Positions 1-26,306 of a stretch of DNA of 30,822 nt are shown one piece after another. Numbering within the stretch: position 1 is the stretch's first letter; the number at the start of each line of letters is the position of its first letter. The stretch comes from Bugula neritina (lineage: Eukaryota > Animalia > Bryozoa). The notes beneath the pieces are model-generated. The model saw only the letters and a list, made by a program, of their open reading frames with translations, had not been told where the DNA came from and ran no database searches. The DNA lies in the NCBI GenBank assembly GCA_964035545.1, contig CAXIUT010000129.1:1-30822 (forward strand). The letters run 5' to 3'. The translations under genes and the position numbers were made by a program.

Positions 1-92
1 CCCAACCCCAACCCCAACCCAACCCCAACCCCAACCCCAACCCCAACCCCAACCCCAACCCCAACCCCAACCCCAACCCCAACCCCAACCCC
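1..92 (+). repeat. Left telomere, (CCCCAA)n
   Basis: Perfect C4A2 hexamer run from base 1, ending CCCC|ttatac; this is the Tetrahymena-type ciliate macronuclear telomere repeat. Confidence 0.98.
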
Positions 93-783
93 TTATACTA
101 CTGTTATACTATTCTATCAAAACAATATTTAAAAAATGTGCTTTCAAAAATCATATAGAATTTATTTTATCAAAAATAATCAATGCTTTAAATGCTTAAT
201 TTGAATGAGATAAATCACTAAACTTCCATCTTCTTTGATAAATAACCTTTAAACGTTAAGATTTTATTTAAATTTTTGCCAACGATCGTGTTTCATCCAT
301 AACTTGCAATATCATTCATTATTAAATTAATAATACTCTTTTTTTTAACTTTTCTTTTTCAGAATATTTTTTAAGATAGTTTTGATGCTTTTCGAATTAA
401 TTTAAAGTTTTTTGTTTCATGATATTTATCAAGATGTTGACTCTAAATAAAAATAAAACATGATGATTGATATTTATAGTTCATCAACTAATATCAAAAT
501 AATCTAATATTAATTCAATTTAAATTTTCGAAGTGTTTTGAGGCCTTGTAGAGAATTTAAAGGTTAAGGAGTTAAGTTTGAATAATTCAAGAATAATTTA
601 AATTTAAATTTTCAACAAAAATCATATTAAACGAACCTTATTGACTCGGTATTATCTGATTTGCTATCTAAATAACTTACATATTTTTTAAATAGTCTCC
701 CAGTAAATGTTGAGCCTTTTTTAAATCGGTTTGATAAACTTCAATCTATATTCTTTCAAATTCTTAACTATATTCAAACTAAC

Positions 784-3700
784 ATGTCCAGCCTAAAGCT
801 ACTATTGGTTCTAGCTCTTATGCTAGCCTCCATGAACGCCCTAGATGTTGGTGAGTGTGTCTAAAGACACAGTGATGGGTGGAGCTGCCTTAAGTGCAGG
901 GATCACTATCATCTCTTTGAGGGTAAATGTTACATTGATATCCTTGGATGCACCGAATACCATGATGGTGCCATCTGCAAGCAGTGTTAATCTGACTACA
1001 TGCTTGTGAACAATCTTTGTTGTGACCCTGTCTGCCTATCAAAGATATTCAGTTCAAACAAAGAAGGACTCATCAAAAAAGATTATTCAGATAAGTCTCA
1101 AGCACTTTCAGTTGTCCTCCCCTTCATCTAAAATGACTGTCTAAACGGAAGTACATATAAATTAGAAACTATCCACTCTGTTGAATATTAACACGAAGTC
1201 CGTTATAAACTTCTCTATCAGGTTATCAACTCATATGAAGGATCTTACATTTCAAAGAGAGCTATTGTTGATTACCACAAGAATACAAAGAAACCATGCA
1301 AAATTGATTGGAGTGAAGTCACAAAGGAAAGAAACTACGGAAAAATTGAAAAACAAAATTTAAATAAAAAATAAAATAAAGATGTACTAGCTTTATTCCC
1401 TGAGCTTTATTCTAGCTCTGAATAATCTAATTCCTATTCAATTCAAAAACACCTTGTAAATGAAGTCGAATAATACAGAATTGTTTTCAAAAACAAGGCA
1501 ATGAATAAAATTTAGTGGAAAATTGTTTATCGTTGCTCAGGAAAACTAGTTGTTTTAAAATAAGGAACTAGACCTATGAAAGGATTTTAAGCTTATAGAA
1601 AAGTATACAAAAACTTAACTGAATTAGCTACTGCTTAGAAAAATGATAAAAAATTAAAAGGAGCAGTTTCTCATGCTATTAGTCTTCCCTCTATGATAGA
1701 GTGTGTATGCACTATTAGAAAAGTCGTTGAATCAGCTAAAAAGGCTTCACTTATTACCTATAGGTTTGTTGCTGAAAATAGTACTCATATTCTCAAGATT
1801 GTGATTCAATTTTCAAGTTCGAAGAAAAAATATACAGTTGTTGATGAAGAATTCAAAAAGAAATAGCCTGATTCTCCTACTCCGATAATTATTCCTTGTA
1901 CTACTGATATTATTGATGAAGAAGATGGTGAATAAACTGAAGTTTTGTAATATCCTCCTGAAGATACTCATAAAGATAAATTCAGAAAGAAAGCTGAAGA
2001 ATATATCAAGGAATTAGAAAAAGTTATTGATTCTGAAAGACAAGAAGAAGTTTCTTATGTTCGTTCTCTTCTTGAAAAAAGACCAAAATCTATGTCAATG
2101 AATAGAAACTGTAAATACAAATAAATAACTATCAAGTATAAACTTTAAAATATTTTTACTTTTATCTATTTCTTGGAAGAAAAGAATACTAAAGAAATTA
2201 AATATGTTGGATATACCAATTCTTCTGATGCTAAAGATCAAAAAATCAATACTAAAATAGACTTTGAGCCTTAGTAGTTTAAATAAATCTTCGGATATAG
2301 AGCTCCCTTTTCTAAAACTTCAATCAAAAAGGTCAAGCTTAGATAAAACTCAGTCTACAAAAGAAAAACTATTGTTGTGAAAGCTGATGGAAATAAAGTA
2401 AACAGGTATCACATGTACTTCAACAAAATGGCTGCTTCTGGAAAAGTTGAAAAACTTGTTAATTTTGTCTGCAGAGGCAATAATGGAGAACATAAACATA
2501 AATAAAGTTGGTCTGATATATTAGGAGTTCAAGGAGTTCGATCTGATGATATCTAAGACGTCACCAGCAAAGATGAAATTGCTGTTTAAGTTATAAAGTT
2601 CTGTAGAGCTAGTAACGTTATCCTTGAGAAATATCTTGTTGTCGAAATTAAACTTACACAATATGAATTAAAACTTGAATATGTTATTATTTTCATGAGA
2701 GAAAAAACTGAAAAAGCTATTGCTGTTGTTGTTCATGATAAAAAAGATCATTCTAATGTTTTAGTAACTGTCGACTTCCTTTCTCTCAAGGAATTTAAAC
2801 AATTTAATAAAACCTAAAGCACATAACTTATCAAACCAAATAGACTTTCTAAAGAAATATTTACCAATCAAGTTGTAACTAAAGTTCTTGAAAAAACTAA
2901 ATAAATACAAAAACCTCAAATAAAAGGATGTATTAGAGGTAGTGAAGCTCCAAATGCTGAGAAAAATATCATTCTTGTTAAAGATTAATAAAAATCATTC
3001 TGGATGGTCATCTGTATTACATCTAGAATCGATACATCGAGCTCAGTTGAACCAATTATCTAAGAAGTGACTGAAATTGATGAACAAATTGTAAAAACTA
3101 TCCTGAAAAAAGGATAAGATCCTTCGAAATAAATTCAAGAAGAAATCTAAGAGCCATAAAGAGTAACATGTGGTACTATTTACAATGGTGGAGCTTATCA
3201 AAATGATCAAAATGTTAAAGAAGAGAAATTAAATAAATAAATGAAAGAATTTCTTAAGTTTATCAAAAGCAAGTAAAATAAAGACAAGCTACCTGGAAAA
3301 CTTTTCAATATTGAACAACATTCTGATGGAGTTGTAAATGAATTCTCATTTAATTTCATTCAAGAAGATGGTAGCTATCACAGATACTTTGTAATTAAAA
3401 AACTACCAAAAGGATAAAAACATGAGATTTTATTTTATATGGGATCAGATATAACGACTTTAAATCCTGAAAAAAATCTATATTTTACACCAACTGATCC
3501 AGTTGAAATCAATAAAGCCTCTGAATAACATCAAAATACCATTAAATTAGTTAACTAAGAAGAGAAAAAAACTTATAGTCAATAAACAAAAGCTGAAACT
3601 TGGACAAGAAAATATCCATTGGGTAACAACTATCATGTGACATATTTAGTTGAGACTTCACATGAAGCAGCAGTATATATAATTAAGCTAAATTCAAAAA

Positions 3701-6700
3701 GGAAAATTATTTAATATATCTAAACGAATAATGAAAATATTAAAGAAATCATACCAGTTATTTCTGTTTGTGTAGGATAAAATAAAAATTAAAATATAGG
3801 TATAAGCACTTGTGAAAAAATAGATGAAAAAATTTAATAAGAATAATCTTTAAATTAAAAGGAATAAGAATAAGAACTTTCTGAATAAAAACCTTCTGAA
3901 TAAGGATAAAAACCTTCAAAACCTGAAATTACTTAGCCAGTTAAGCCAGTAGACAAATCATGTGCTAATATTGTTGTTAATGGAGGTTTCCAAAGACCTA
4001 ACACTAAAAATAATTGGAATAAATTCGATAAAATTCCAGGATGGAAAGGAGAAGGAATTGAAATTGGTCAAGGAAAATTCTACAATAAAGGATGGAAAAG
4101 TCAAGTTTGTGAACTCGATAGTCACAAAAATTATGCTATTAGTCAAAAATGGAACTTCGATAGTGACTACCAACTCAAGGATAGCAAGAATAAGCTTTCC
4201 CCTGCTCCAATCCTATCTAACAAGTTTATTATAACACTTAACTATGCCTGTAGATAAAATGTCAAATTAAGTTCATGCAAGGGTGTATTGACTTGGAATG
4301 GTAAATAATATCAAATCAATCCTGATAATCATGCTGTTAAAAAATTCAAAGTCTAAGTTTAAGTCAAGTAAGGACAAAACACACTATAACTCAAAGGATC
4401 AGGCTAAAGTGATTATGTTGGTCTCACAATTGATAATGTCAAAATGAGAAGAGTATGCCCAAAAGAAAAAGAAGAAGAATTATCTTAAGGAGTTATTGTC
4501 ACCACTGAAGGATAAGAACCTTCTACATAAGAAATTTCTGAAAAAGAATAAGAACCTTCTGGATAAAAACCTTCTGAATAAGGATAAAAACCTTCTGGAT
4601 AAAAACCTTCTGAATAAGGATAAAAACCTTCTGGATAAAAACCTTCTGAATAAGGATAAAAACCTTCTGGATAAAAACCTTCAAAACCTGAAATTTCTTA
4701 GCCAGTTAAACCAGTAGACAAATCATGCGCTAATATTGTTGTTAATGGAGGTTTCCAAAGACCTAACACCAAAAAGAGTTGGGGTAAATTTGATAAAGTT
4801 CCAGGATGGAAAGGAAAAGGAATTGAAATTGGTTTTGGAACAATCTACAATAAAGGATGGAAAAGTCAAGTTTGTGAACTCGATAGTCACAAAAATTATG
4901 CTATTAGTCAAAAATGGAACTTCGATAGTGACTACCAACTCAAGGATAGCAAGAATAAGCTTTCCCCTGCTCCAATCCTATCTAACAAGTTTATTATAAC
5001 ACTTAACTATGCCTGTAGATAAAATGTCAAATTAAGTTCATGCAAGGGTGTATTGACTTGGAATGGTAAATAATATCAAATCAATCCTGATAATCATGCT
5101 GTTAAAAAATTCAAAGTCTAAGTTTAAGTCAAGTAAGGACAAAACACACTATAACTCAAAGGATCAGGCTAAAGTGATAAACTTGGTCTCACAATTGATA
5201 ATGTCAGAATGAGAAGAGTATGCCCAAAAGAAAAAGAAGAAGAATTATCTTAAGGAGTTATTATCACCACTGAAGGATAAGAACCTTCTACATAAGAAAT
5301 TTCTGAAAAAGAATAAGAACCTTCTGGATAAAAACCTTCTGAATAAGGATAAAAACCTTCTGGATAAAAACCTTCTGAATAAGGATAAAAACCTTCTGGA
5401 TAAAAACCTTCTGAATAAGGATAAAAACCTTCTAGATAAAAACCTTCAAAACCTGAAATTTCTTAGCCAGTTAAGCCAGTAGACAAATCATGCGCTAATA
5501 TTGTTGTTAATGGAGGTTTCCAAAGACCTAACACCAAAAAGAGTTGGGGTAAATTTGATAAAGTTCCAGGATGGAAAGGAAAAGGAATTGAAATTGGTTT
5601 TGGAACAATCTACAATAAAGGATGGAAAAGTCAAGTTTGTGAACTCGATAGTCACAAAAATTATGCTATTAGTCAAAAATGGAACTTCGATAGTGACTAC
5701 CAACTCAAGGATAGCAAGAATAAGCTTTCCCCTGCTCCAATCCTATCTAACAAGTTTATTATAACACTTAACTATGCCTGTAGATAAAATGTCAAATTAA
5801 GTTCATGCAAGGGTGTATTGACTTGGAATGGTAAATAATATCAAATCAATCCTGATAATCATGCTGTTAAAAAATTCAAAGTCTAAGTTTAAGTCAAGTA
5901 AGGACAAAACACACTATAACTCAAAGGATCAGGCTAAAGTGATAAACTTGGTCTCACAATTGATAATGTCAGAATGAGAAGAGTATGCCCAAAAGAAAAA
6001 GAAGAAGAATTATCTTAAGGAGTTATTATCACCACTGAAGGATAAGAACCTTCTACATAAGAAATTTCTGAAAAAGAATAAGAACCTTCTGGATAAAAAC
6101 CTTCTGAATAAGGATAAAAACCTTCTGGATAAAAACCTTCTGAATAAGGATAAAAACCTTCTGGATAAAAACCTTCTGAATAAGGATAAAAACCTTCTAG
6201 ATAAAAACCTTCAAAACCTGAAATTTCTTAGCCAGTTAAGCCAGTAGACAAATCATGCGCTAATATTGTTGTTAATGGAGGTTTCCAAAGACCTAACACC
6301 AAAAAGAGTTGGGGTAAATTTGATAAAGTTCCAGGATGGAAAGGAAAAGGAATTGAAATTGGTTTTGGAACAATCTACAATAAAGGATGGAAAAGTCAAG
6401 TTTGTGAACTCGATAGTCACAAAAATTATGCTATTAGTCAAAAATGGAACTTCGATAGTGACTACCAACTCAAGGATAGCAAGAATAAGCTTTCCCCTGC
6501 TCCAATCCTATCTAACAAGTTTATTATAACACTTAACTATGCCTGTAGATAAAATGTCAAATTAAGTTCATGCAAGGGTGTATTGACTTGGAATGGTAAA
6601 TAATATCAAATCAATCCTGATAATCATGCTGTTAAAAAATTCAAAGTCTAAGTTTAAGTCAAGTAAGGACAAAACACACTATAACTCAAAGGATCAGGCT

Positions 6701-9700
6701 AAAGTGATAAACTTGGTCTCACAATTGATAATGTCAGAATGAGAAGAGTATGCCCAAAAGAAAAAGAAGAAGAATTATCTTAAGGAGTTATTATCACCAC
6801 TGAAGGATAAGAACCTTCTACATAAGAAATTTCTGAAAAAGAATAAGAACCTTCTGGATAAAAACCTTCTGAATAAGGATAAAAACCTTCTGGATAAAAA
6901 CCTTCTGAATAAGGATAAAAACCTTCTGGATAAAAACCTTCTGAATAAGGATAAAAACCTTCTAGATAAAAACCTTCAAAACCTGAAATTTCTTAGCCAG
7001 TTAAGCCAGTAGACAAATCATGCGCTAATATTGTTGTTAATGGAGGTTTCCAAAGACCTAACACCAAAAAGAGTTGGGGTAAATTTGATAAAGTTCCAGG
7101 ATGGAAAGGAAAAGGAATTGAAATTGGTTTTGGAACAATCTACAATAAAGGATGGAAAAGTCAAGTTTGTGAACTCGATAGTCACAAAAATTATGCTATT
7201 AGTCAAAAATGGAACTTCGATAGTGACTACCAACTCAAGGATAGCAAGAATAAGCTTTCCCCTGCTCCAATCCTATCTAACAAGTTTATTATAACACTTA
7301 ACTATGCCTGTAGATAAAATGTCAAATTAAGTTCATGCAAGGGTGTATTGACTTGGAATGGTAAATAATATCAAATCAATCCTGATAATCATGCTGTTAA
7401 AAAATTCAAAGTCTAAGTTTAAGTCAAGTAAGGACAAAACACACTATAACTCAAAGGATCAGGCTAAAGTGATAAACTTGGTCTCACAATTGATAATGTC
7501 AGAATGAGAAGAGTATGCCCAAAAGAAAAAGAAGAAGAATTATCTTAAGGAGTTATTATCACCACTGAAGGATAAGAACCTTCTACATAAGAAATTTCTG
7601 AAAAAGAATAAGAACCTTCTGGATAAAAACCTTCTGAATAAGGATAAAAACCTTCTGGATAAAAACCTTCTGAATAAGGATAAAAACCTTCTGGATAAAA
7701 ACCTTCTGAATAAGGATAAAAACCTTCTGGATAAAAACCTTCAAAACCTGAAATTTCTTAGCCAGTTAAACCAGTAGACAAATCATGCGCTAATATTGTT
7801 GTTAATGGAGGTTTCCAAAGACCTAACACCAAAAAGAGTTGGGGTAAATTTGATAAAGTTCCAGGATGGAAAGGAAAAGGAATTGAAATTGGTTTTGGAA
7901 CAATCTACAATAAAGGATGGAAAAGTCAAGTTTGTGAACTCGATAGTCACAAAAATTATGCTATTAGTCAAAAATGGAACTTCGATAGTGACTACCAACT
8001 CAAGGATAGCAAGAATAAGCTTTCCCCTGCTCCAATCCTATCTAACAAGTTTATTATAACACTTAACTATGCCTGTAGATAAAATGTCAAATTAAGTTCA
8101 TGCAAGGGTGTATTGACTTGGAATGGTAAATAATATCAAATCAATCCTGATAATCATGCTGTTAAAAAATTCAAAGTCTAAGTTTAAGTCAAGTAAGGAC
8201 AAAACACACTATAACTCAAAGGATCAGGCTAAAGTGATAAACTTGGTCTCACAATTGATAATGTCAGAATGAGAAGAGTATGCCCAAAAGAAAAAGAAGA
8301 AGAATTATCTTAAGGAGTTATTATCACCACTGAAGGATAAGAACCTTCTACATAAGAAATTTCTGAAAAAGAATAAGAACCTTCTGGATAAAAACCTTCT
8401 GAATAAGGATAAAAACCTTCTGGATAAAAACCTTCTGAATAAGGATAAAAACCTTCTGGATAAAAACCTTCTGAATAAGGATAAAAACCTTCTGGATAAA
8501 AACCTTCAAAACCTGAAATTTCTTAGCCAGTTAAGCCAGTAGACAAATCATGCGCTAATATTGTTGTTAATGGAGGTTTCCAAAGACCTAACACCAAAAA
8601 GAGTTGGGGTAAATTTGATAAAGTTCCAGGATGGAAAGGAAAAGGAATTGAAATTGGTTTTGGAACAATCTACAATAAAGGATGGAAAAGTCAAGTTTGT
8701 GAACTCGATAGTCACAAAAATTATGCTATTAGTCAAAAATGGAACTTCGATAGTGACTACCAACTCAAGGATAGCAAGAATAAGCTTTCCCCTGCTCCAA
8801 TCCTATCTAACAAGTTTATTATAACACTTAACTATGCCTGTAGATAAAATGTCAAATTAAGTTCATGCAAGGGTGTATTGACTTGGAATGGTAAATAATA
8901 TCAAATCAATCCTGATAATCATGCTGTTAAAAAATTCAAAGTCTAAGTTTAAGTCAAGTAAGGACAAAACACACTATAACTCAAAGGATCAGGCTAAAGT
9001 GATAAACTTGGTCTCACAATTGATAATGTCAGAATGAGAAGAGTATGCCCAAAAGAAAAAGAAGAAGAATTATCTTAAGGAGTTATTATCACCACTGAAG
9101 GATAAGAACCTTCTACATAAGAAATTTCTGAAAAAGAATAAGAACCTTCTGGATAAAAACCTTCTGAATAAGGATAAAAAACTTCTGGATAAAAACCTTC
9201 TGAATAAGGATAAAAACCTTCTGGATAAAAACCTTCTGAATAAGGATAAAAACCTTCTAGATAAAAACCTTCAAAACCTGAAATTTCTTAGCCAGTTAAG
9301 CCAGTAGACAAATCATGCGCTAATATTGTTGTTAATGGAGGTTTCCAAAGACCTAACACCAAAAAGAGTTGGGGTAAATTTGATAAAGTTCCAGGATGGA
9401 AAGGAAAAGGAATTGAAATTGGTTTTGGAACAATCTACAATAAAGGATGGAAAAGTCAAGTTTGTGAACTCGATAGTCACAAAAATTATGCTATTAGTCA
9501 AAAATGGAACTTCGATAGTGACTACCAACTCAAGGATAGCAAGAATAAGCTTTCCCCTGCTCCAATCCTATCTAACAAGTTTATTATAACACTTAACTAT
9601 GCCTGTAGATAAAATGTCAAATTAAGTTCATGCAAGGGTGTATTGACTTGGAATGGTAAATAATATCAAATCAATCCTGATAATCATGCTGTTAAAAAAT

Positions 9701-12700
9701 TCAAAGTCTAAGTTTAAGTCAAGTAAGGACAAAACACACTATAACTCAAAGGATCAGGCTAAAGTGATAAACTTGGTCTCACAATTGATAATGTCAGAAT
9801 GAGAAGAGTATGCCCAAAAGAAAAAGAAGAAGAATTATCTTAAGGAGTTATTATCACCACTGAAGGATAAGAACCTTCTACATAAGAAATTTCTGAAAAA
9901 GAATAAGAACCTTCTGGATAAAAACCTTCTGAATAAGGATAAAAACCTTCTGGATAAAAACCTTCTGAATAAGGATAAAAACCTTCTGGATAAAAACCTT
10001 CTGAATAAGGATAAAAACCTTCTGGATAAAAACCTTCAAAACCTGAAATTTCTTAGCCAGTTAAGCCAGTAGACAAATCATGCGCTAATATTGTTGTTAA
10101 TGGAGGTTTCCAAAGACCTAACACCAAAAAGAGTTGGGGTAAATTTGATAAAGTTCCAGGATGGAAAGGAAAAGGAATTGAAATTGGTTTTGGAACAATC
10201 TACAATAAAGGATGGAAAAGTCAAGTTTGTGAACTCGATAGTCACAAAAATTATGCTATTAGTCAAAAATGGAACTTCGATAGTGACTACCAACTCAAGG
10301 ATAGCAAGAATAAGCTTTCCCCTGCTCCAATCCTATCTAACAAGTTTATTATAACACTTAACTATGCCTGTAGATAAAATGTCAAATTAAGTTCATGCAA
10401 GGGTGTATTGACTTGGAATGGTAAATAATATCAAATCAATCCTGATAATCATGCTGTTAAAAAATTCAAAGTCTAAGTTTAAGTCAAGTAAGGACAAAAC
10501 ACACTATAACTCAAAGGATCAGGCTAAAGTGATAAACTTGGTCTCACAATTGATAATGTCAGAATGAGAAGAGTATGCCCAAAAGAAAAAGAAGAAGAAT
10601 TATCTTAAGGAGTTATTATCACCACTGAAGGATAAGAACCTCTACATAGAAATTTCTGAAAAAGAATAAGACCTTCTGGATAAAAACCTTCTGAATAAGG
10701 ATAAAAACCTTCTGGATAAAAACCTTCTGAATAAGGATAAAAACCTTCTGGATAAAAACCTTCTGAATAAGGATAAAAACCTTCTGGATAAAAACCTTCA
10801 AAACCTGAAATTTCTTAGCCAGTTAAGCCAGTAGACAAATCATGCGCTAATATTGTTGTTAATGGAGGTTTCCAAAGACCTAACACCAAAAAGAGTTGGG
10901 GTAAATTTGATAAAGTTCCAGGATGGAAAGGAAAAGGAATTGAAATTGGTTTTGGAACAATCTACAATAAAGGATGGAAAAGTCAAGTTTGTGAACTCGA
11001 TAGTCACAAAAATTATGCTATTAGTCAAAAATGGAACTTCGATAGTGACTACCAACTCAAGGATAGCAAGAATAAGCTTTCCCCTGCTCCAATCCTATCT
11101 AACAAGTTTATTATAACACTTAACTATGCCTGTAGATAAAATGTCAAATTAAGTTCATGCAAGGGTGTATTGACTTGGAATGGTAAATATATCAAATCAA
11201 TCCTGATAATCATGCTGTTAAAAAATTCAAAGTCTAAGTTTAAGTCAAGTAAGGACAAAACACACTATAACTCAAAGGATCAGGCTAAAGTGATAAACTT
11301 GGTCTCACAATTGATAATGTCAGAATGAGAAGAGTATGCCCAAAAGAAAAAGAAGAAGAATTATCTTAAGGAGTTATTATCACCACTGAAGGATAAGAAC
11401 CTTCTACATAAGAAATTTCTGAAAAAGAATAAGAACCTTCTGGATAAAAACCTTCTGAATAAGGATAAAAACCTTCTGGATAAAAACCTTCTGAATAAGG
11501 ATAAAAACCTTCTGGATAAAAACCTTCTGAATAAGGATAAAAACCTTCTGGATAAAAACCTTCTGAATAAGGATAAAAACCTTCTGGATAAAAACCTTCA
11601 AAACCTGAAATTTCTTAGCCAGTTAAACCAGTAGACAAATCATGCGCTAATATTGTTGTTAATGGAGGTTTCCAAAGACCTAACACCAAAAAGAGTTGGG
11701 GTAAATTTAATAAAGTTCCAGGATGGAAAGGAAAAGGAATTGAAATTGGTTTTGGAACAATCTACAATAAAGGATGGAAAAGTCAAGTTTGTGAACTCGA
11801 TAGTCACAAAAATTATGCTATTAGTCAAAATGGAACTTCGATAGTGACTACCAACTCAAGGATAGCAAGAATAAGCTTTCCCCTGCTCCAATCCTATCTA
11901 ACAAGTTTATTATAACACTTAACTATGCCTGTAGATAAAATGTCAAATTAAGTTCATGCAAGGGTGTATTGACTTGGAATGGTAAATAATATCAAATCAA
12001 TCCTGATAATCATGCTGTTAAAAAATTCAAAGTCTAAGTTTAAGTCAAGTAAGGACAAAACACACTATAACTCAAAGGATCAGGCTAAAGTGATAAACTT
12101 GGTCTCACAATTGATAATGTCAGAATGAGAAGAGTATGCCCAAAAGAAAAAGAAGAAGAATTATCTTAAGGAGTTATTATCACCACTGAAGGATAAGAAC
12201 CTTCTACATAAGAAATTTCTGAAAAAGAATAAGAACCTTCTGGATAAAAACCTTCTGAATAAGGATAAAAACCTTCTGGATAAAAACCTTCTGAATAAGG
12301 ATAAAAACCTTCTGGATAAAAACCTTCTGAATAAGGATAAAAACCTTCTGGATAAAAACCTTCTGAATAAGGATAAAAACCTTCTGGATAAAAACCTTCA
12401 AAACCTGAAATTTCTTAGCCAGTTAAACCAGTAGACAAATCATGCGCTAATATTGTTGTTAATGGAGGTTTCCAAAGACCTAACACCAAAAAGAGTTGGG
12501 GTAAATTTAATAAAGTTCCAGGATGGAAAGGAAAAGGAATTGAAATTGGTTTTGGAACAATCTACAATAAAGGATGGAAAAGTCAAGTTTGTGAACTCGA
12601 TAGTCACAAAAATTATGCTATTAGTCAAAAATGGAACTTCGATAGTGACTACCAACTCAAGGATAGCAAGAATAAGCTTTCCCCTGCTCCAATCCTATCT

Positions 12701-15700
12701 AACAAGTTTATTATAACACTTAACTATGCCTGTAGATAAAATGTCAAATTAAGTTCATGCAAGGGTGTATTGACTTGGAATGGTAAATAATATCAAATCA
12801 ATCCTGATAATCATGCTGTTAAAAAATTCAAAGTCTAAGTTTAAGTCAAGTAAGGACAAAACACACTATAACTCAAAGGATCAGGCTAAAGTGATAAACT
12901 TGGTCTCACAATTGATAATGTCAGAATGAGAAGAGTATGCCCAAAAGAAAAAGAAGAAGAATTATCTTAAGGAGTTATTATCACCACTGAAGGATAAGAA
13001 CCTTCTACATAAGAAATTTCTGAAAAAGAATAAGAACCTTCTGGATAAAAACCTTCTGAATAAGGATAAAAACCTTCTGGATAAAAACCTTCTGAATAAG
13101 GATAAAAACCTTCTGGATAAAAACCTTCTGAATAAGGATAAAAACCTTCTGGATAAAAACCTTCAAAACCTGAAATTTCTTAGCCAGTTAAGCCAGTAGA
13201 CAAATCATGCGCTAATATTGTTGTTAATGGAGGTTTCCAAAGACCTAACACCAAAAAGAGTTGGGGTAAATTTAATAAAGTTCCAGGATGGAAAGGAAAA
13301 GGAATTGAAATTGGTTTTGGAACAATCTACAATAAAGGATGGAAAAGTCAAGTTTGTGAACTCGATAGTCACAAAAATTATGCTATTAGTCAAAAATGGA
13401 ACTTCGATAGTGACTACCAACTCAAGGATAGCAAGAATAAGCTTTCCCCTGCTCCAATCCTATCTAACAAGTTTATTATAACACTTAACTATGCCTGTAG
13501 ATAAAATGTCAAATTAAGTTCATGCAAGGGTGTATTGACTTGGAATGGTAAATAATATCAAATCAATCCTGATAATCATGCTGTTAAAAAATTCAAAGTC
13601 TAAGTTTAAGTCAAGTAAGGACAAAACACACTATAACTCAAAGGATCAGGCTAAAGTGATAAACTTGGTCTCACAATTGATAATGTCAGAATGAGAAGAG
13701 TATGCCCAAAAGAAAAAGAAGAAGAATTATCTTAAGGAGTTATTATCACCACTGAAGGATAAGAACCTTCTACATAAGAAATTTCTGAAAAAGAATAAGA
13801 ACCTTCTGGATAAAAACCTTCTGAATAAGGATAAGAACCTTCTGGATAAAAACCTTCTGAATAAGGATAAAAACCTTCTGGATAAAAACCTTCTGAATAA
13901 GGATAAAAACCTTCTAGATAAAAACCTTCAAAACCTGAAATTTCTTAGCCAGTTAAGCCAGTAGACAAATCATGCGCTAATATTGTTGTTAATGGAGGTT
14001 TCCAAAGACCTAACACCAAAAAGAGTTGGGGTAAATTTGATAAAGTTCCAGGATGGAAAGGAAAAGGAATTGAAATTGGTTTTGGAACAATCTACAATAA
14101 AGGATGGAAAAGTCAAGTTTGTGAACTCGATAGTCACAAAAATTATGCTATTAGTCAAAAATGGAACTTCGATAGTGACTACCAACTCAAGGATAGCAAG
14201 AATAAGCTTTCCCCTGCTCCAATCCTATCTAACAAGTTTATTATAACACTTAACTATGCCTGTAGATAAAATGTCAAATTAAGTTCATGCAAGGGTGTAT
14301 TGACTTGGAATGGTAAATAATATCAAATCAATCCTGATAATCATGCTGTTAAAAAATTCAAAGTCTAAGTTTAAGTCAAGTAAGGACAAAACACACTATA
14401 ACTCAAAGGATCAGGCTAAAGTGATAAACTTGGTCTCACAATTGATAATGTCAGAATGAGAAGAGTATGCCCAAAAGAAAAAGAAGAAGAATTATCTTAA
14501 GGAGTTATTATCACCACTGAAGGATAAGAACCTTCTACATAAGAAATTTCTGAAAAAGAATAAGAACCTTCTGGATAAAAACCTTCTGAATAAGGATAAA
14601 AACCTTCTGGATAAAAACCTTCTGAATAAGGATAAAAACCTTCTGGATAAAAACCTTCTGAATAAGGATAAAAACCTTCTGGATAAAAACCTTCAAAACC
14701 TGAAATTTCTTAGCCAGTTAAGCCAGTAGACAAATCATGCGCTAATATTGTTGTTAATGGAGGTTTCCAAAGACCTAACACCAAAAAGAGTTGGGGTAAA
14801 TTTGATAAAGTTCCAGGATGGAAAGGAAAAGGAATTGAAATTGGTTTTGGAACAATCTACAATAAAGGATGGAAAAGTCAAGTTTGTGAACTCGATAGTC
14901 ACAAAAATTATGCTATTAGTCAAAAATGGAACTTCGATAGTGACTACCAACTCAAGGATAGCAAGAATAAGCTTTCCCCTGCTCCAATCCTATCTAACAA
15001 GTTTATTATAACACTTAACTATGCCTGTAGATAAAATGTCAAATTAAGTTCATGCAAGGGTGTATTGACTTGGAATGGTAAATAATATCAAATCAATCCT
15101 GATAATCATGCTGTTAAAAAATTCAAAGTCTAAGTTTAAGTCAAGTAAGGACAAAACACACTATAACTCAAAGGATCAGGCTAAAGTGATAAACTTGGTC
15201 TCACAATTGATAATGTCAGAATGAGAAGAGTATGCCCAAAAGAAAAAGAAGAAGAATCTAAATAAATTGTTGTATAAGATGGTGGTGATTCTTCAAAACC
15301 TCCTATTTGTGTGTTACCTCCACCTCATTCTAAAACTTCTCTTTAAATAGCTCTGTAATATTTACATAAGACTACTAAATTAAAAGGTTGTTAACTCTAG
15401 AATTATTAATAAACTATATTCAATTCAGCCGTTACATTTATATTGGATTTAAAATGTAAGTAAAATAAAAAAACTATTAAATGTTCTGCTTCCGTATCTT
15501 TGTTATCAAATTCAAATAAAATTCTTAACTATGAAGAATGTGAAGAACCTTAAGTTAATCCTAAACCAGATTAATTCAAACCACCTATCGTTACTGGTCC
15601 TGAATAAGAAAATAATGGAGAAGGTAAAGAATAAGATAGTATTTAAATATGTGGATAACTAGATGATGAGGAGGAGAATGTAGAAGAATAAGTACTTGAC

Positions 15701-17314
15701 CCTAATGAAGCCTACATTCTTGAAGCTATTGAACTAATCAATGAAGAATAAAGTCATGACAAATCTCTTGCTCCTGTTGACTCAGACATTGCAGCTATTG
15801 ATGAGATTATTATCTATCTTAGAGCTTCATATGTTGTCCTCGATAATTGTGCTGTTATCAAAGTTAGTCAAGACATTTCATATACTGTCAATAACAAACA
15901 AAGATACGTTATCTACTGTTTTAATGCTCCTGAACCTGGTCAAAAATATATTGTCTATAGATCAATAGTTGATTTTGATGAGTCAACTGAATAAACTAGA
16001 ATCATGATTCTTGCTTTTGATGTCTATATTAAAAACGACAAAGTTCTTATTTCTGTTCCCAAAAAAATTAAAAAAGCTATCTCTAAAGCTTAAAGTTTGG
16101 ATGTAGATGTCGCCTATGGATATGAAAATATTGATTTATCAGCTGCTGAATCAGATCAAAATGTTAAAAGTATCCTCAGTCAAATCAACTCTAAATATAG
16201 TACTCTTACTAAAGGTAAAACTTTACAATCTATTGAGCTGATGGAATTGAAAAATGGAAAACTTAACTACAAAATAATGTTCTTTGATCCAGTTACTCAT
16301 CTTAATGTCAAGTTTATCGTATATTACGATCCTTCCATTCAAAAAGTCATGCTTTTGAACACAGTTAACCTTCCTTCATCTCAAAGATTTGAAGAACTAT
16401 CTGAATCTGAGAAAATGAAAGATTCTCAACTTACTGATATCTTAAAACTCTTGCATAACCTTCATGAAAAAGAAATGAGTGGCTACAAATTACAATGTGT
16501 CAGTAAAGGAACTGTTGAAGCTAATGTTGTTGAGTATCATGTGACATGGACTTCCTCAGGAATTCAATACAGATCATATGTCAAATCTTTCTCAGGATCA
16601 CTTGAATAAACTTCCTTTGGATAACTTCAAACTATTTCTCTTGATCATTACAGATTAGATGAGTTCGAAAAAATGTTCATCATGAACTATCAAAAGCTTA
16701 GTGACAATGAAATTAAAACTGATACCAACTTCCATACTGCCTACTAAACACTTTTGTCAGAAAACAAAAATCTTGCCTAGTCATCTCTTATTGGAGCAGC
16801 TCAAAAACCTTTAGGTCTAGGCTTCGTTTATCACATTTTCTCAAGAATCTCTGGAGGTGCTATCATGAGATCCGAAGTATTCCTTGAATTGTACACTCTA
16901 AAAGCTACTGTTAAGAGTGTTGTAAATGAAGATTTTAAGAATGGATTTGTTTCTCTCAGTCAATAAGACAAGTCAATCAAAAAAATTATTTCTGTTCTTG
17001 ATAAGCAAGCAACTAAACCATCTCTTCAAAAACAACAATATAAAGTTCAGTCAGTCTAAGGAAAAGATTTTATCTTCGGAAAACTTTACAAAATCACTGT
17101 TTCTCTCAAAGGAAGACCTTTCACTGCCTTTGAATACCATGATGAATCATCAGAAGAAGTTCTTCTTTTGAACTGGTCAAATCAAAACAAACCTACTGGT
17201 TGTGCTACAGAAAACAATGATGGTCAGTGCTCAAAATGCGTCTAAGGATATACTCGTATTAATGACATGTGTATCTATGGCTGTGGAGTCCTATGCAAAG
17301 CAATTGAGTTCTGA
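784..17314 (+). CDS. Giant secreted repeat protein (~5,511 aa after restoring five 1-bp deletions): signal peptide, Cys-rich ends, cystatin-like repeats, 15 DUF642/CBM-like domains
   Basis: With TAR=Glu, ATG784 opens MSSLKLLLVLALMLASMNA|LDVGECVERHSDGWSCLKC... with no TGA until an indel-generated TGA at 10657. The frame resumes downstream and ends ...CIYGCGVLCKAIEF-TGA17312-17314. No introns are needed. Five single-base deletions relative to sister repeats lie at ~10640, ~10648, ~10671, ~11189 and ~11830. No C-terminal TM or GPI segment is seen. Confidence 0.85.
3890..15256 (+). repeat. Coding tandem array: 15 copies of a 765-bp (255-aa) unit
   Basis: Domain starts (CANIVVNGGF) at 3961, 4726, 5491, 6256, 7021, 7786, 8551, 9316, 10081, 10843, 11643, 12443, 13208, 13973, 14738. 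Spacing is 765 except 762, 800 and 800. Copies 2-15 are almost identical. Each linker carries a nested 36-bp repeat (PSGEKPSEEGEK) x3, or x4 in two units. Confidence 0.97.
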
Positions 17315-17406
17315 AAATGATATTCATTCTATAGTTATGTTAATTATCTACTTATTAAAATTAATTCATTATGTATTGATAATTAAAGTTTTTAAAATAT
17401 CTGATA

Positions 17407-18467
17407 TCAAAAATCTTCATCAGTTTTATATCTAATTTTCTCTTTTTACTGACCTGTTTTCTTTAAACCAGATGATTTCTTTTTTAAATTTTTATTTGAC
17501 TTGGATTTTGGCTCAATTTACATCATCAATCCCTGACCAGAAGTACCAATATTTCTTTGAACTCCATCTCTTTCTATAAGCTATTCTTAAGGATCAGCTA
17601 TCACTACTCTATTTCCACATAAAGCTTTTATGATATTTTTAAAACAAAAATTTCTATATCTATGATAAAATACTTTCTAAAGGGATTCCCTGCGACTGCA
17701 TTCCATGTGTTTTTACAAAATTCGTTTGTAGTTTGGTTGATAATTGAGAGATAGATATGAAAGAAAAATAAAGATGATACAAAAGCCCACGCTAAAAATG
17801 CCAATACAACAAGAACTATGTTGAAAGCAAAAGCTACACCAGATTAGAGGTCTTTAGCCACTAAAGCTCCTTGAATTACTACCAATATACTTTAAATCTA
17901 TAATGATGTAACAAATCCAATAAAAAGAGCATAATTTCTTTTACCAACACAAGTGCCAATCCAAGGACAATGATGATCAAATTTTTCTATACACATATTA
18001 CATTAATAGCAATGAGATGTCCTCGGAGGTCGATAGACATAACAAGTAGAACAAAATTTTAACCTCAAAGTATGAGTTTTGATAACTATTGGGTAGATAT
18101 TTTAACGGTCTCGCATAGAACCTTCTGTATATCGTTTGCTTATAGGTATTCTTTTTAGTTCCTGTCTCTAAAATTAACTAAAAATTTTAGGAATTGTCCC
18201 TGGATCTTTGAATCCTAAGGCTAATAACAAAACTTGCAAGATGATATTTATAATTCCAGTTATTACTACAAAAGCAATTGAAGATCTCCATGCGCAGACT
18301 CCGTAGTAAAGTCCCATAATAATCCATACAATGAGATGAGTGCCAATATATTTTTTCGGTTAAGAGAGTAAAAAACCACAACAAGATCTATACATTTTAT
18401 AGTTGGGAATTTGTGAGACCTAACTCGCCTTAATGATGTGCTTTTATCGATGCTTTTATTTAGGCAT
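17407..18467 (-). CDS. DHHC-type S-palmitoyltransferase (346 aa; intron 17654-17673)
   Basis: DPG motif; [43 protein letters not shown]; TM segments; NQTTNE and NPF motifs; a 20-nt GT-AG intron restores the frame; ends TGA. Confidence 0.95.
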
Positions 18468-18834
18468 ATAGAGAATTGATAACTATGAACTTTAGTTTAA
18501 TTAATAAAGCTTTGAATTGAAAAAAAATCTTTAGACAATAATTATCAACAATCATGAGAGTTAAATTATGTTTAAAATAATTAAATTGATAAATTCGACT
18601 CATTTTTTAATTCTAACTGAAAAAAAAAAACATTCATCATGATTAAAATATTTTTGGCCTCGATTTTTATTATCAGTTTCTTACAAGCAAAATATTTGTT
18701 TTTAATCTTTTTTCAAGATAAATATTCTTTGAATCATAAAATAATTATTAATTATTACGATTGAAAGTTATCTTGGATATCGTAATTAATCTATAAAATC
18801 CTAAATTATAATTTTTACTTAAGTTATTAGACAA

Positions 18835-19632: not shown

Positions 19633-21263
19633 ATGTAAGGGGTTGGGGTTGGGGTTGGGGTTGGGGTTGGGGTTGGGGTTGGGGTTGGGGTTGGGGTTGG
19701 GGACATATTTAGCAAATCAGATCCATATGTCAAATTATCCTATAAAAGAGATTATACTCAGCAATATTTTTCTCAGATAGGGAGGACATAAACAATTAAA
19801 AATAACTCTAATCCAAATTTTTCAAAAAGCTTTGTCATTGATTTCGTATTTGAATCTAGACAAGAGATCAAATTCGATATTTACGATGATGATGAAGGAA
19901 AAGATTAATTGATTGGTTATGTTGAAACAACTGTTGGTAATTTAATGGGTTCAAGAAGTCAATCTGCAACCTTAGACATAAAAAATGATTCAGAGATTAA
20001 AAAAGCAACTGGAAAACTAATAGTACGTTGTTAAAAAACACAGTAAACTTTAGGTATTGTTAAATTTATATAGGAATTTTGCAGATGCTTTGGAAAGCTG
20101 ATAAATTGTACAATGTAGATTCTTGGTTTGATTTTTGGGATAAAAGTGATCCATATATTAAATTTTTCAAAGTAAGAAATGATGAAAGCAGTATTTAAAT
20201 AAAACGAACAGAAGTTGTCAAAGATAATTTAAATCCTTCCTGGAAATCTATTTAAATCTAAACTTCTAGATTAATTAATCCAAAAAAGCAAGGATTTAGG
20301 CTTTAAGTTTGGGATTGGTAAGAAGATGGAGAGGATAGAATCATTGGGTCAGCATTTGTCCCTTTAACACAATTAAATAATGGTGCAACTGTTGCTTTAA
20401 CAAGCTCTTAAAATAAAAATCCTGGTGTCCTCACACTCTAAAATATCAAATGGATTCAAACTCCAACTTTTATCGACTATTTAAGAGCAGGATTATAACT
20501 GAACATGATCGTAGCTATCGATTTTACTGCTTCTAATGGATTATCTAAATTTCCTGATGCTCTTCATTATGTAAGTTAAAAAACTATTAATCAGTATCAA
20601 TTAGCTATTTCATCTGTTGCTCAAATATTGATGAACTATGATAGTAATCAAAAGATTCCAGCTTTTGGTTTTGGAGCTAAAACAAAGTTTGATGGAATCT
20701 TAACACATGTGAGTCATTGCTTTCCTTTAAGTGGAAATTTTAATTAAACAGAAGCTACTGGCATTTAAGATCTCATGAACTTATATAAAAAAGTTTTAAA
20801 TTATATCTAACTTTCTGGTCCAACTCTTTTTGGACCAATTATTTAAGAAACTATGAAACTAGCTTTCAGATGTAAACAATAGGGCTCAAGAATTTATCAA
20901 ACTCTATTAATATTAACTGATGGTTAAATTCATGATATGGATCATACGATATAGTTGATAATAAAGGCAACATATCTTCCAATGTCCATTATAATAGTAG
21001 GAATTGGAAAATAAAGTTTTTAAAAAATGTCTTGTCTTGATGGAGATAACGGATTAGTAGATTCAAATGGTCAAAAAGCACCAAGAGATATTGTACAGTT
21101 CATACCATTTAGATAATTGCAAATGAATGGAGATCTTTTAGCAAAATAAGTTCTAGCATAACTTCCCAATCAAGTCATACAATATATGACTATGCTCGGA
21201 AAATCTCCAGGATAGTTTGTCCCCATTAAAATAGAATAATTGATGAAAAACAAACAATTATGA
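19633..21263 (+). CDS. Copine (C2A-C2B-vWA); native 5' strand replaced by telomeric repeat; intron 20054-20073
   Basis: DIFSKSDPYV...GRTETIKNNSNPNF (C2A); WDKSDPYIKF...RTEVVKDNLNPSW (C2B); VAIDFTASNG, AFGFGA, SGPTLFGPII, LTDGEIHDM, LPMSIIIVGIG, RDIVQFIPF (vWA). Recognisable sequence starts at 19702. ATG19633 is in frame (536 aa) but the true start is uncertain. Confidence 0.9.
19639..19702 (+). repeat. Internal telomeric tract (GGGGTT)10GGGG
   Basis: Perfect 64-bp G4T2 run in right-end orientation, with no C4A2 counterpart after it. Confidence 0.97.
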
Positions 21264-21744: not shown

Positions 21745-21877
21745 TTTTACCAACACTAATTATTATTTAAAATCAAATTACTCAAAATATTAATAAATCT
21801 GAGAAAAATAATCTTTTCATTTAATTCTTTTCAAATCAATATTCTTTATTTTATCAAAAGGTTTGTAATTTAAAAAT

Positions 21878-23608
21878 ATGATCTCATTAAAAATTCTATA
21901 TGCATTTCTTCTAACCTTTTTGTTCAATTGCAAACTCAAATAAATCGATAACTTTGTCTCTATTGCTATTATTGGAACTAACGATATACATGGAAATGCC
22001 TTTCCTATTGAACTCTAACGCTCTGATAATAAATAATCCTATAAGTATGGAGGACTACAATACATGGCTTCTATGATCTAAACTATTAAATAATAACACA
22101 AAGGCAACTTTCTTTATTTCGATGCTGGAGATCAATTTCAAGGAGGAATATAGTCTTCTCCTCTTGTTAGTTCAGGATAAATTATGAATGACTTTTTCAA
22201 TGAAATCAAAGTCGATAGTTCTGCAATTGGCAATCATTAGTTTGATTTTGGATCTAATTTCCTTCTCTATTATTTGTTAAATCGAAAAGGTTCTTCAAAC
22301 TTGGCTGCAAATTTAAAATCTTCTCAAGGAGAATAATAATTTTTGCCAGAACATAAAAATATCAAACTTTTTACCTTATAATCGGGAATCAAAATAGGAG
22401 TCATTGGTCTAACAACTCTTTAAACTTTAAGTACTACAAATGCTTTCCATAATAAGGCTTTTCCATTATACTAATTCCATGATTATGTCGAAATAATTAA
22501 AAAGCAAAGTAAAATATTACGTTAGCAAAGAGCAAATGCTATTATTTTAGTTGGTCATTTAGGAAATCGATGTAATGCAGATTCTACTTTTGGTTGGTGG
22601 TACTAAAGTACGATGCAACCAAGTGAATGTAAAAAAAATGATTAAATCAGTAAAATAATTGATTCTTTGCCTTCAGGAACAATAGATGCAGTTGTTCAAG
22701 GACATAGACATACTTTTTCGCATCATTTTGTTAATGGAATACCTATCATGAGTACAATTAATGGAGGAGCATACTTTAATATTCTATATTTATAGTTTTA
22801 TAATAACCAAATCGTTCAAAAGTTTATCTAAGGTCCTATTCCTGTCTGTTAAAAAGTTTTTTCTAATCTTAGAAAATGTGATTATCAAACTAAATAAGCT
22901 TTGAAAACCGCAGGAGATCTCGTTGAGTGGTAATTTCATGGTAAAAAGGTAAAATCTCATCCAAGAATAGAGAAACTTTTCTAAATAAAATGGATACCAA
23001 AAATGAAAGAATTTATGTAACCTTTAGTTTTAAATGAGGTCTATCTTCGATCTTAATTTGATTGTGAAAGTAAAATGGGAAATCTAATAACTGATCTTAT
23101 AGATATGTCCTTTCCTTAGAACGATTTTATCATTATCAATGAAGGAGGATTTAGAACAACTTGGTTTCCTGGAACTATTCAATTCCAACATTTTTATAAC
23201 ATGTTTCCTTTCACTGATAGTTTAGTGTCTTTTTAAATAACAGGTTAAGAACTTTTAAAAACTCTTTCGATTGTTCAAACTGGTAAAAAAGCCTTTTATC
23301 CGACTAAAAAATTAAAACAGGCAATTAGAATATATTCAAATAGTTCTAAGTAGTTTGTGTACGCAACTTTCTCTGATGATAGTCCTATTTAATTATCAAG
23401 CATTTACCGAGGAATTTCACTTGATTTTTTAATTAATGGAGGAGATTAATTTCGAAATGTTGTCCATAAAGTAGCTTAGTTTAAAAATATAAAAGAGTTA
23501 GGTGATTATAGAGATACAATCAAATTTCAACTTTAAAAACTTGGAACCATCAAATAAAACAAACTTATCGACCTCGAAAATCCTAGAATATTGATAAATA
23601 AAATTTGA
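21878..23608 (+). CDS. Secreted 5'-nucleotidase/apyrase-family metallophosphoesterase (576 aa)
   Basis: Signal-like N-terminus; GTNDIHG, DAGDQFQG, AIGNHEFDFG, VGHLG, QGHRH; C-domain ESKMGNLITD, NEGGFR, MFPF, LINGGD; intronless; ends TGA. Confidence 0.93.
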
Positions 23609-25406: not shown

Positions 25407-26306
25407 TCATTCTTTTCTTTAATTTTAGGGAAAATGCCATTCTTTTCCAGGAGTATAACGCAATAGTTCATAAAGTTATTTCCTTGTTTGCATACGATTA
25501 GCAAATTATTTCTGAGTGCCATTTGTTTTTAAATCAGTAAAAAACTCATCTATTGCTTTCATAGCTACTCTAAGAGTTGAAACAGGATATATCACACAGT
25601 TATATCCATAATCTTTAAAAGTATCAATATCAATGTAAGGAGTTTTCCCGAATTAAGTCATATTAGCCAATAAGAATACATCTTTTTTATGATTTTTAAG
25701 AGCTTTAGCAACTACTTTAAATTCATCAGCAGTGTCCAAACCTTCAGGGAAAATCATATCTGCTCCAGCATCAATATATGCCTTCGATCTATTGATACAT
25801 TCATCTAATCCGATCACTCCTTTAGCATCAGTCCTTGCACAAACTACAAATTATCCATCTGATACTTTCACAGATGTCTATCTAGCTATTTTTATCTTAT
25901 CGATCATTTGTTGAGTTGGAATCAGTTATTTTCCTCCAAGATGTCCACATCGCTTGGGAAATACTTGATCTTCTATATGTAGTCCAGCTGCTCCGGAATA
26001 AAACATATCACTAACTGTTCTGGCACACATTTCTCCTTACCCGAATCCAGTATCAGCATCGACAATAACAGGTAAATTAGAGAACATACTGACATCTTTA
26101 ACAACAGAGGTAAATTCTGAAAGAGTACGAAGACCAACATCTGGAACTCCTGATGAGGCAGTAAGAGCACCGCCTGAAATGTAAAGAGCTTTAAAGCCAT
26201 GCACAGCTGCTAGACGAGCTACTAAGCCATTATAACATCCAGGAACCATCAAGCATTCAGAAGAAAGGAGTTTTCTGAATTCTTTACATCTTGCAATTAG
26301 CTGCAT
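25407..26306 (-). CDS. prpB: 2-methylisocitrate lyase (299 aa)
   Basis: YISGG, GVPDVGL, DADTGFGE, HIEDQVFPKRCGH (the KRCGH motif typical of MICL), ARTDA, IFPEG, LANMTEFGKTP, YPVS; intronless. Confidence 0.93.

Follow-up and report, generated by a model that had tools for sequence, protein, structure and literature searches.

A candidate multivalent extracellular protein with fifteen DUF642-type beads, encoded on a ciliate chromosome that appears to read TAA and TAG as glutamate

The reading that we favour, to which we assign a probability of roughly 0.55, is that the giant gene described here is a real ciliate nuclear gene which reads TAA and TAG as Glu and encodes a multivalent extracellular cross-linker or adhesive carrying beads of the DUF642 type. 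The predicted product of about 5,500 residues consists, in order, of a signal peptide, a Cys-rich cap, an N region, an array of 15 domains, a C region and a Cys-rich end (Table 1). A role in an extracellular matrix or in adhesion is plausible, and the protein would then be a variant of the known type of multivalent lectin-repeat matrix protein.

Table 1. Features of the giant gene and of the window, numbered from the first base of the window.
Feature	Position	Strand	Remarks
Left telomere, (CCCCAA)n	1..92	.	Sequence
Giant gene	784..17314	+	Intronless; 5,511 codons plus TGA; 398 in-frame TAA/TAG read as Glu
Signal peptide, ~20 aa	784..843	+	Hydropathy 1.91; cleavage site placed by eye
N-terminal Cys-rich cap	856..1035	+	10 Cys at aa 25-84; two C-x8/9-C-x2-C-x10-C units
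N region	1036..3966	+	aa 85-1061; divergent repeats of a ~90-120-aa module; acidic run at end
Array of 15 DUF642-like jelly-roll domains	3967..15232	+	163 aa each; 14 linkers
Frame-break stretch	10640..11827	+	Gaps after 10640, 10647, 10670, 11188 and 11826; units 9-11
C region	15233..17200	+	44-56% identity across 8 aligned metagenome contigs that read through TAA/TAG; also on others
C-terminal Cys-rich cap	17201..17314	+	6 Cys in last 37 aa; GCGVLCK end
Right telomere, (GGGGTT)n	30731-30822	.	Sequence

Genetic code and reading frame

The window, by which we mean the whole 30.8-kb stretch of DNA that was analysed, possesses a telomere at both ends and is therefore a complete macronuclear chromosome. 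An earlier note on this DNA had proposed that its TAA and TAG codons specify Glu, and this is borne out by two comparisons. TAA/TAG positions in the bead-domain alignment are too variable within the family to decide the code, and conserved enzymes and an alignment of the C module were used instead. When set against E. coli PrpB and UshA, TAA/TAG fall on Glu at five conserved sites (within the motifs NIT-E-FG, TRN-E-LYE, GNH-E-FD, DF-E-F and TW-E), on Asp at a sixth, and never on Gln. In the alignment of nine C-module sequences, the columns containing TAA/TAG hold 37.6% Glu elsewhere versus a background of 5.0%, an enrichment of 7.5-fold for Glu as against 2.3-fold for Gln. The orthologue contigs that reach the 3′-end of the gene also stop at TGA. 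These alignments support a code in which TAA and TAG are Glu and TGA is the only stop, as in the peritrich code (NCBI table 30). From the code and the G4T2 telomeres, the ciliate is most likely a sessilid peritrich. Matches to chitin synthase in the same assembly were dismissed as ciliate evidence; they lie on contigs of more than 12 Mb and resemble metazoan exons.

In the assembly the giant gene is split over several ORFs. When TGA alone is taken as a stop, the plus strand is open at 205-10659, 11049-11972 and 11795-17314. Five one-base gaps, seen against the repeat consensus, disrupt the frame, and all of them sit in homopolymers of 2-5 bases. The in-frame TGA at 10657-10659 arises from these gaps. 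Placing an N at each of them yields a continuous ORF with five X, in which no internal TGA is found before the stop at 17312-17314 and in which the codons read as Glu comprise 376 TAA and 22 TAG. Among 1,745 non-repeat codons, TGA occurs 0 times in the coding frame, compared with 23 and 120 times in the other two frames. The single gene claimed in the earlier note is thus recovered over its full 5,511 codons, but only after the five gaps, at 10.64-11.83 kb, have been bridged. The breaks are probably assembly errors, the loss of one base from a homopolymer being the usual error of long reads. Programmed frameshifting was ruled out because the remaining 12-14 units carry intact sequence at the matching places.

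An oligo-dT seawater metatranscriptome contains one 201-nt contig which corresponds to 17096-17294 with one mismatch; coming from an RNA library, it gives a hint of transcription, though it could derive from DNA. The depth of run X1 is approximately 110-130 over the 3′ part of the gene and drops to 0 within some 30 nt of the stop codon, which suggests cDNA rather than the DNA of one chromosome; no library type is recorded for X1, X3 or X24.

Secretion signal, caps and flanking regions

The segment that starts at Met784 is the sole one in the whole protein to exceed a Kyte-Doolittle value of 1.6; no further hydrophobic segment was found with this scale, and the C-terminus is not hydrophobic. 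These data agree with the proposal of a signal peptide without a membrane anchor, and support secretion of the predicted protein.

Both ends of the protein are rich in Cys, and the Cys motif of the N-terminal cap recurs in the C-terminal one. To call them rich in CxxC, as had been done, was generous, since there are two CxxC among the ten Cys of the N-terminal cap and a single CxxC among the six of the other. A Pfam search with ten stop-free pieces gave nothing significant. Furin-like_2 matched the N-terminal cap below threshold (E = 0.028), and neither cap matched VWD, C8, TIL or CTCK in Pfam, the short stop-free pieces limiting the sensitivity of that search. The GCGVLCK end motif is conserved in the orthologues, being retained on all six contigs that reach the 3′-end (L009, L012, L031, L034, L036 and L037).

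The stretch ahead of the array had been described as about 1,000 residues of unique sequence. Its length is confirmed (1,061 aa), but its uniqueness is not, as weak internal repeats can be seen, and the module of which they are composed recurs in the C region. No Pfam match to the N region was found with stop-free pieces, and homologues of its piece 1639-1863 were not found. The further 650 or so residues expected after the array are present as a C region of 693 aa. There the predicted secondary structure repeats a pattern of one helix and three to four strands. AlphaFold, run without an alignment on a 171-aa piece of this region, gives the same pattern twice, at a pLDDT of 51. When the flanking module was compared with PepSY and cystatin-like modules, the Atlas language model returned "PepSY" (0.90), with low recognition. 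Both flanks appear to be weak repeats of an undescribed helix-plus-sheet module.

The C module is single-copy in this assembly and recurs on the contigs L009, L012 and L031-L038, all of which read through TAA/TAG. A metagenome scan with a single C piece gave no match; a profile of the C module detected eight loci, and all of these contigs break 0.7-1.4 kb upstream, inside repeats. Wherever sequence upstream of an orthologous C module could be read, it consists of low-complexity tandem repeats that are rich in either Thr/Ser/Pro or Glu/Lys/Pro. Neither a profile search of PDB sequences nor Pfam searches with orthologue fragments produced a match. Judged by these alignments, the C-terminal 650 or so residues define an unnamed family, with members on at least nine further metagenome contigs that read TAA/TAG as sense.

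The bead array and its fold

The earlier note's 15 domains with long acidic linkers are found in the sequence. There are exactly 15 repeat units (starts at 3937, 4702 ... 14714) with a period of 765 bp, except for units 10 and 11, which measure about 800 bp; units 2-14 share 98.7-100% DNA identity. The depth of repeat words relative to the unique part is 24-fold and 16-fold in two independent runs. Each of the 14 linkers is 92 or 104 aa in length and includes five or six copies of a 36-bp sub-repeat; they are composed of 31.5% Glu, 14% each of Ser, Lys and Pro, and 9.5% Gly, with a net charge of approximately -17. Every bead contains five Cys, the fifth of which has no evident partner.

On the strength of sequence links and a modelled fold, the bead is a divergent jelly roll of the DUF642 type, which is CBM-like. 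A phmmer search with a stop-free half of the bead (106 aa) recovered 164 proteins among 1.84 billion, the best at E = 5e-93. These include the DUF642-carrying proteins P0003 (5.7e-40), P0043 (3e-12) and P0085 (1.7e-08), and in several of the relatives Pfam DUF642 covers the matched domains. An HMM of the family spans the DUF642 segment of P0043 (888-1044) at 2.4e-34, and 17 of the 84 family domains reach Pfam DUF642. The 106-aa half itself gave no match to Pfam DUF642 (PF04862) at E <= 1, nor did the nearest stop-free full domain, P0004:338-503. The nearly invariant residues of the family are all present in the bead of this gene.

The evidence on fold comes from a proxy, the same P0004:338-503, which is the closest stop-free relative and is 45-55% identical to the bead. 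AlphaFold models this domain as a beta-sandwich (pLDDT 92). Its best matches in the ESM Atlas are DUF642 clusters with TM scores of 0.83 and 0.82 (rmsd 2.2-2.3 over 152-154 residues), and its best Foldseek matches in PDB include CBM35, CBM16, a porphyran CBM and the sugar-binding domain of Fbs1. Non-lectins of the same jelly-roll superfamily, namely the HpiC1 cyclases and MAM domains, score equally in the PDB search. The glycan-binding core of the earlier note therefore stands as far as a fold of carbohydrate-binding type is concerned, given the DUF642 links and the CBM matches; that the beads bind glycans we infer from this modelled fold, the leads from the language model being weak.

None of the sources searched yielded a named eukaryotic relative of the bead, and a literature search found no paper linking DUF642 with ciliates. 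The claim that the architecture is undescribed holds insofar as no source names any relative, but arrays of the bead also occur elsewhere: the contig C108 of the same assembly carries at least 37 more domains of this type, and protist contigs bear arrays of four to seven.

Possible roles and comparable systems

As a cross-linker or adhesive, the protein might function as follows. Each bead would bind polysaccharide weakly; 15 such beads on flexible tethers would therefore attain a high avidity and could bridge fibrils or surfaces. The acidic Glu/Lys/Pro/Ser linkers are presumed to be extended and flexible, and the Cys-rich ends, together with the seemingly partnerless Cys of the beads, may join molecules by disulfides. 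The target could be a stalk, holdfast, lorica or cell coat, or else the surface of another organism, whether prey, symbiont or host.

A more specific role, which we think unlikely, is that of a matrix polymer in the stalk, holdfast or lorica of a sessile peritrich, with the beads binding chitin or another polysaccharide of the stalk and the linkers acting as entropic springs, whose acidic, Pro-rich character would tolerate contraction and recoil. In favour of this role, the genetic code indicates a peritrich, the C module occurs solely on TAA/TAG-reading contigs, and the predicted product is a very large, multivalent, secreted protein; but the giant protein is not singled out for the stalk, because dozens of further secreted proteins with lectin-like repeats are encoded in the same genome.

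Less credible again is a surface or oral lectin coat, or the cargo of an extrusome, which would serve to catch bacteria, retain ectosymbionts or adhere to the cuticle of a host. A multivalent, CBM-like, secreted protein would be appropriate to this task, and peritrichs feed as bacterivores (PMC12411067). The rest of the assembly resembles that of a larger eukaryote, with its contigs of more than 12 Mb and metazoan-type chitin synthase exons, so the ciliate could be an epibiont. Against a coat, there is no anchor that would keep the protein on the cell, and epibiont status is itself a deduction.

It is improbable that we are dealing with the principal elastic component of the matrix in a peritrich stalk or attachment disc. 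In such a scheme the beads would grip chitin fibrils, and the linkers, as entropic springs, would supply the passive recoil by which the stalk is re-extended. The C module of some 650 aa, which ends in the GCGVLCK cystine motif, would then be a polymerisation domain specific to peritrichs and common to an entire family of matrix proteins of mucin-like type.

Least probable is a decaying or truncated gene in which the five frameshifts are genuine and the product is at most an N-terminal 3,291 residues ending at the TGA created by the gaps: the breaks are present in the sole assembly available and cluster within 1.2 kb, but all five are one-base losses of the kind typical of long reads, the 1,839 codons downstream remain free of TGA, the C module is conserved relative to its orthologues, and independent contigs, drawn from three studies, match the 3′ part without indels at an identity of at least 99%.

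To our knowledge, little appears to be known of the proteins behind the stalks, loricae and adhesive discs of sessile ciliates; the composition of the peritrich stalk is reportedly the subject of a 2025 study by Jiang et al. (J Eukaryot Microbiol e70006, cited in PMC12411067). The giant gene, the C-module family and the many paralogous bead proteins offer concrete candidates for the building of these structures. Relatives are present in public protein sets just as unnamed fragments cut at TAA/TAG, and gene callers using the standard code miss the giant gene; for these reasons whole classes of secreted peritrich proteins are probably missing from databases. Should the protein prove to be one lectin-repeat protein among many, the case would be an ordinary one.

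Among known systems, the CBMs of the family 35/16/6 type and Fbs1 (galactose-binding-like) share the beta-sandwich (Foldseek E ~1e-5, TM 0.5-0.64), but with 12-20% identity and no binding-site residues that can be mapped. Proteins with DUF642 (PF04862) have the same jelly roll as the bead, with an N-x-[LIV]-x-N-G-x-F start, PGW, ELD and an IDNV end, are secreted, and commonly contain several copies, as in plant cell-wall proteins and bacterial multi-domain surface proteins such as the "Ig-like domain-containing" proteins of Planctomycetota. In contrast, the bead and its nearest ciliate-type relatives score below the Pfam threshold, and the bead is distinguished by a mid-domain loop of about 20 residues, five Cys, 15 copies, 92-aa acidic linkers and an array joined to undescribed terminal modules.

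The mucin- or vWF-like layout suggested previously applies to the overall plan. Like the gel-forming mucins and vWF, the protein is giant and predicted to be secreted, with Cys-rich ends flanking a long central repeat, and the C-module orthologues have Thr/Ser/Pro-rich repeats in the central position. The resemblance does not extend to the domains themselves (VWD, C8, TIL and CTCK were not detected by Pfam in the stop-free pieces), and the centre here, instead of being a pure glycosylated PTS region, alternates folded beads with Glu/Lys/Pro/Ser linkers.

The bead proteins of C108 and of the metagenome contig L003 possess the same domain at 45-61% identity, signal peptides, TAA/TAG as sense codons, and linkers rich in Ser/Pro/Glu or in Pro. 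They differ in having neither an N region nor a C region like those described here, and in having circularly permuted units, with the C-half first, the N-half last and the linker placed in the mid-domain loop.

Chromosome and genetic code

The window (30,822 bp, ~31% G+C) comprises one entire contig, C138, of its assembly. Telomere repeats at its two ends, (CCCCAA)n on the left and (GGGGTT)n on the right, mark it as a complete telomere-capped ciliate macronuclear chromosome. G4T2 telomeres of this kind are compatible with the Oligohymenophorea. Nothing evident ties the function of the other genes on the chromosome (see table) to that of the giant gene. A telomere-like tract, (GGGGTT)n or its complement, also lies internally at 19633-19720, just upstream of the copine-like reading frame, and similar tracts are present in loci L029 (~7050-7200) and L030 (~6480-6560) of contig C108; these translate as (GV)n or (PN)n, and suggest either that chromosomes have alternative ends or that several macronuclear chromosomes are chained in one contig.

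Reading frames on the chromosome
Feature	Position	Strand	Remark
Long open frame	205-10659	+	TGA-only stop
Long open frame	11049-11972	+	TGA-only stop
Long open frame	11795-17314	+	TGA-only stop
DHHC palmitoyltransferase	17604-18551	-	in-frame TAA/TAG
Copine	19989-21260	+	in-frame TAA/TAG
5'-nucleotidase with its own signal peptide	21803-23605	+	in-frame TAA/TAG
PrpB/isocitrate-lyase-family enzyme	25410-26396	-	in-frame TAA/TAG

The giant gene contains 398 in-frame TAA/TAG codons as against 366 GAA/GAG. Comparison of two conserved enzymes of the window with their E. coli counterparts PrpB and UshA shows that, in the well-conserved blocks, TAA/TAG falls on Glu at NIT-E-FG, TRN-E-LYE, GNH-E-FD, DF-E-F and TW-E, on Asp at DP-D-FV, and in no case on Gln. 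In a nine-sequence alignment of the C module, the C-terminal ~650 residues of the giant protein, Glu makes up 37.6% of the residues in the other sequences at TAA/TAG columns versus a background of 5.0% (7.5-fold), the enrichment of Gln being just 2.3-fold. These alignments bear out the reading of TAR as Glu proposed in the earlier note. TAA/TAG is likewise read as sense on the C module contigs L009, L012 and L031-L038, and the six that reach the 3'-end of the gene share a TGA stop after ...FGCGVLCK.... Glutamate at TAA/TAG combined with a TGA stop corresponds to NCBI table 30, a code which, to our knowledge, is confined to peritrichs.

Reading frame and expression of the giant gene

With TGA as the sole stop, the gene is covered by three long open frames whose translations run on from one another. 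The non-repeat parts have no TGA among 1,745 codons of the coding frame; the remaining two frames have 23 and 120. Alignment of the 15 units reveals five one-base losses relative to the repeat consensus (three in unit 9, and one each in units 10 and 11), all within homopolymers of 2-5 bases; those in unit 9 add up to -3 and result in the TGA at 10657-10659. Inserting N at the five positions gives an unbroken reading from Met784 to the TGA at 17312-17314 (5,511 codons, five of them X). The losses are probably long-read errors; the units are 98.7-100% identical, and the comparison covered contigs of public runs. The coordinates and counts first put forward are accurate, but the single ORF is, as assembled, interrupted by five frame breaks.

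The stretch 14900-17300 is matched, at 99% identity or more and without indels, by contigs of public sequencing runs that come from three studies and bear three organism labels. The ratio of repeat to unique word depth is 24x in run X1, 16x in X3 and 1.7x in X24, the first two agreeing with at least 15 units. In X1 the depth is ~110-130 over the gene and drops to zero ~30 nt past the stop and through the next 350 nt of the chromosome, which is easier to explain if the library, whose type is not on record, is cDNA rather than DNA. One oligo-dT seawater metatranscriptome adds a contig of 201 nt lying on the C cap; the two observations are a hint, not proof, of expression. Within 14900-17700, one X1 contig has a loose end reading GGGGTTGG before 15173, just past the last bead; this could reflect coincidence or the infrequent addition of a telomere within the gene.

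Protein layout and the bead domain

The signal peptide is the sole segment of the giant protein with hydropathy >1.6, and neither a transmembrane segment nor a hydrophobic C-terminus was found by hydropathy over its whole length, in keeping with a secreted protein lacking a membrane anchor, as first described. A Cys-rich cap (aa 25-84, 10 Cys) is followed by the N region, which extends to aa 1061. There follow 15 domains of exactly 163 aa, separated by 14 linkers of 92 aa (two are of 104) built from a 36-bp sub-repeat and composed of Glu (31.5%), Ser, Lys and Pro (14% each) and Gly (9.5%), with a net charge of ~-17. The C region has 693 aa, with six Cys in its final 37 residues. Each domain carries five Cys: a pair kept in the ciliate subfamily (YACR...SC.G), two flanking the domain ends, and one, in QVCELD, where the family usually has Val.

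The stop-free 106-aa half of the bead has no Pfam match. An exhaustive phmmer search retrieved 164 proteins, the top one at E = 5e-93; many of them carry 2-9 copies of the domain, and DUF642 covers the matched segments in bacterial and some unnamed relatives. Among 84 aligned family domains, Pfam assigns 17 to DUF642, four to CBM35 and two to HpiC1-like; the domain of the giant gene keeps all nearly invariant residues. The nearest stop-free relative, modelled with the 84-sequence alignment, is a beta-sandwich (pLDDT 92), whose Foldseek neighbours are CBM35, CBM16, a porphyran CBM, the Fbs1/Fbs2 sugar-binding domains, HpiC1-type cyclases and MAM, and whose ESM Atlas matches are DUF642 clusters (TM 0.83 and 0.82). 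We accordingly class the bead as a divergent jelly roll of DUF642 type, for which glycan binding would be a reasonable inference.

The bead is multicopy in the assembly, with at least 37 more on contig C108 across several secreted genes, and other contigs encode proteins with 4-7 beads. One multi-bead contig (L001) has standard stops, and the multi-bead protein P0007 (locus L004) is encoded beside kinesin and SecY/Sec61-type genes. No relatives surfaced from annotated ciliate genomes, and among the papers searched none mentions both DUF642 and ciliates. Secreted paralogues on C108 (L028, L029, L030) and at L003:363-3989 have a circularly permuted order, with the C-half directly after the signal peptide, the N-half at the protein end, and Ser/Pro/Glu- or Pro-rich linkers within the mid-domain loop. 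Two readings are possible: the individual units are permuted domains, or half-domains associate with one another across the linkers, so that the terminal halves have no partner.

By sliding-window phmmer, stretches of the N and C regions resemble each other weakly, as do the two caps (best E = 2e-4), so that the flanks look like divergent arrays of a ~90-120-aa module. The N-terminal sequence earlier called unique shares these weak repeats with the C region. The module has no match in Pfam or among PDB sequences; a language-model search gave PepSY as a weak pointer, and a poor single-sequence AlphaFold model (pLDDT 51) of a 171-aa stop-free C piece shows a helix plus 3-4 strands, twice.

Setting and possible role of the giant protein, and relatives of the C module

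The assembly (216 Mb, 321 contigs, some >12 Mb) contains exon-wise chitin-synthase matches with EDRW...QRRRW motifs, typical of animal chitin synthases, on contigs C3, C4, C5 and C8 (L039-L042). Contigs of this size and metazoan-type exons suggest that the ciliate is a cobiont sequenced within a larger organism's assembly.

The evidence agrees with a secreted scaffold whose multiple domains, on flexible polyanionic tethers, probably bind glycans; the giant protein would hence be an extracellular cross-linker or adhesive. A stalk, holdfast or lorica component would be an attractive assignment; sessilid stalks are reported to contain chitin (Jiang et al. 2025, as cited in PMC12411067). Many similar candidates are encoded in the same genome, and since the ciliate appears to be a cobiont, the protein may instead serve to attach to a host or to bind prey or symbionts. 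The interpretation in the earlier note is supported in part, namely in the code, secretion, the carbohydrate-binding-type fold of the beads and a mucin-like overall plan; its peritrich stalk, holdfast or matrix polymer is a conjecture.

The C module occurs once in the assembly. Its C-terminal piece has 12 fragment matches (54-75% identity), none of them named, and eight contigs align with the giant gene at 44-56% identity over ~650 aa. Upstream, these relatives carry tandem low-complexity repeats, Glu/Lys/Pro-rich, Thr/Ser/Pro-rich or TDKPAV-like (for instance PSTGDLTSPTPSTGEPTPTPT, TeTSTQAPTTTTN..., EeKPRKDEE and EPEEEeKPEKPETGKPT), which are very regular in L009:3-845, the first ~500 nt of L034/L035 and the first ~300 nt of L031-L033. 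The contigs break within the repeats, and beads may or may not occur farther upstream. By their sequence the repeats look like those of mucins, and they are the strongest argument that these proteins follow a mucin-like plan ending in a conserved C-terminal module.
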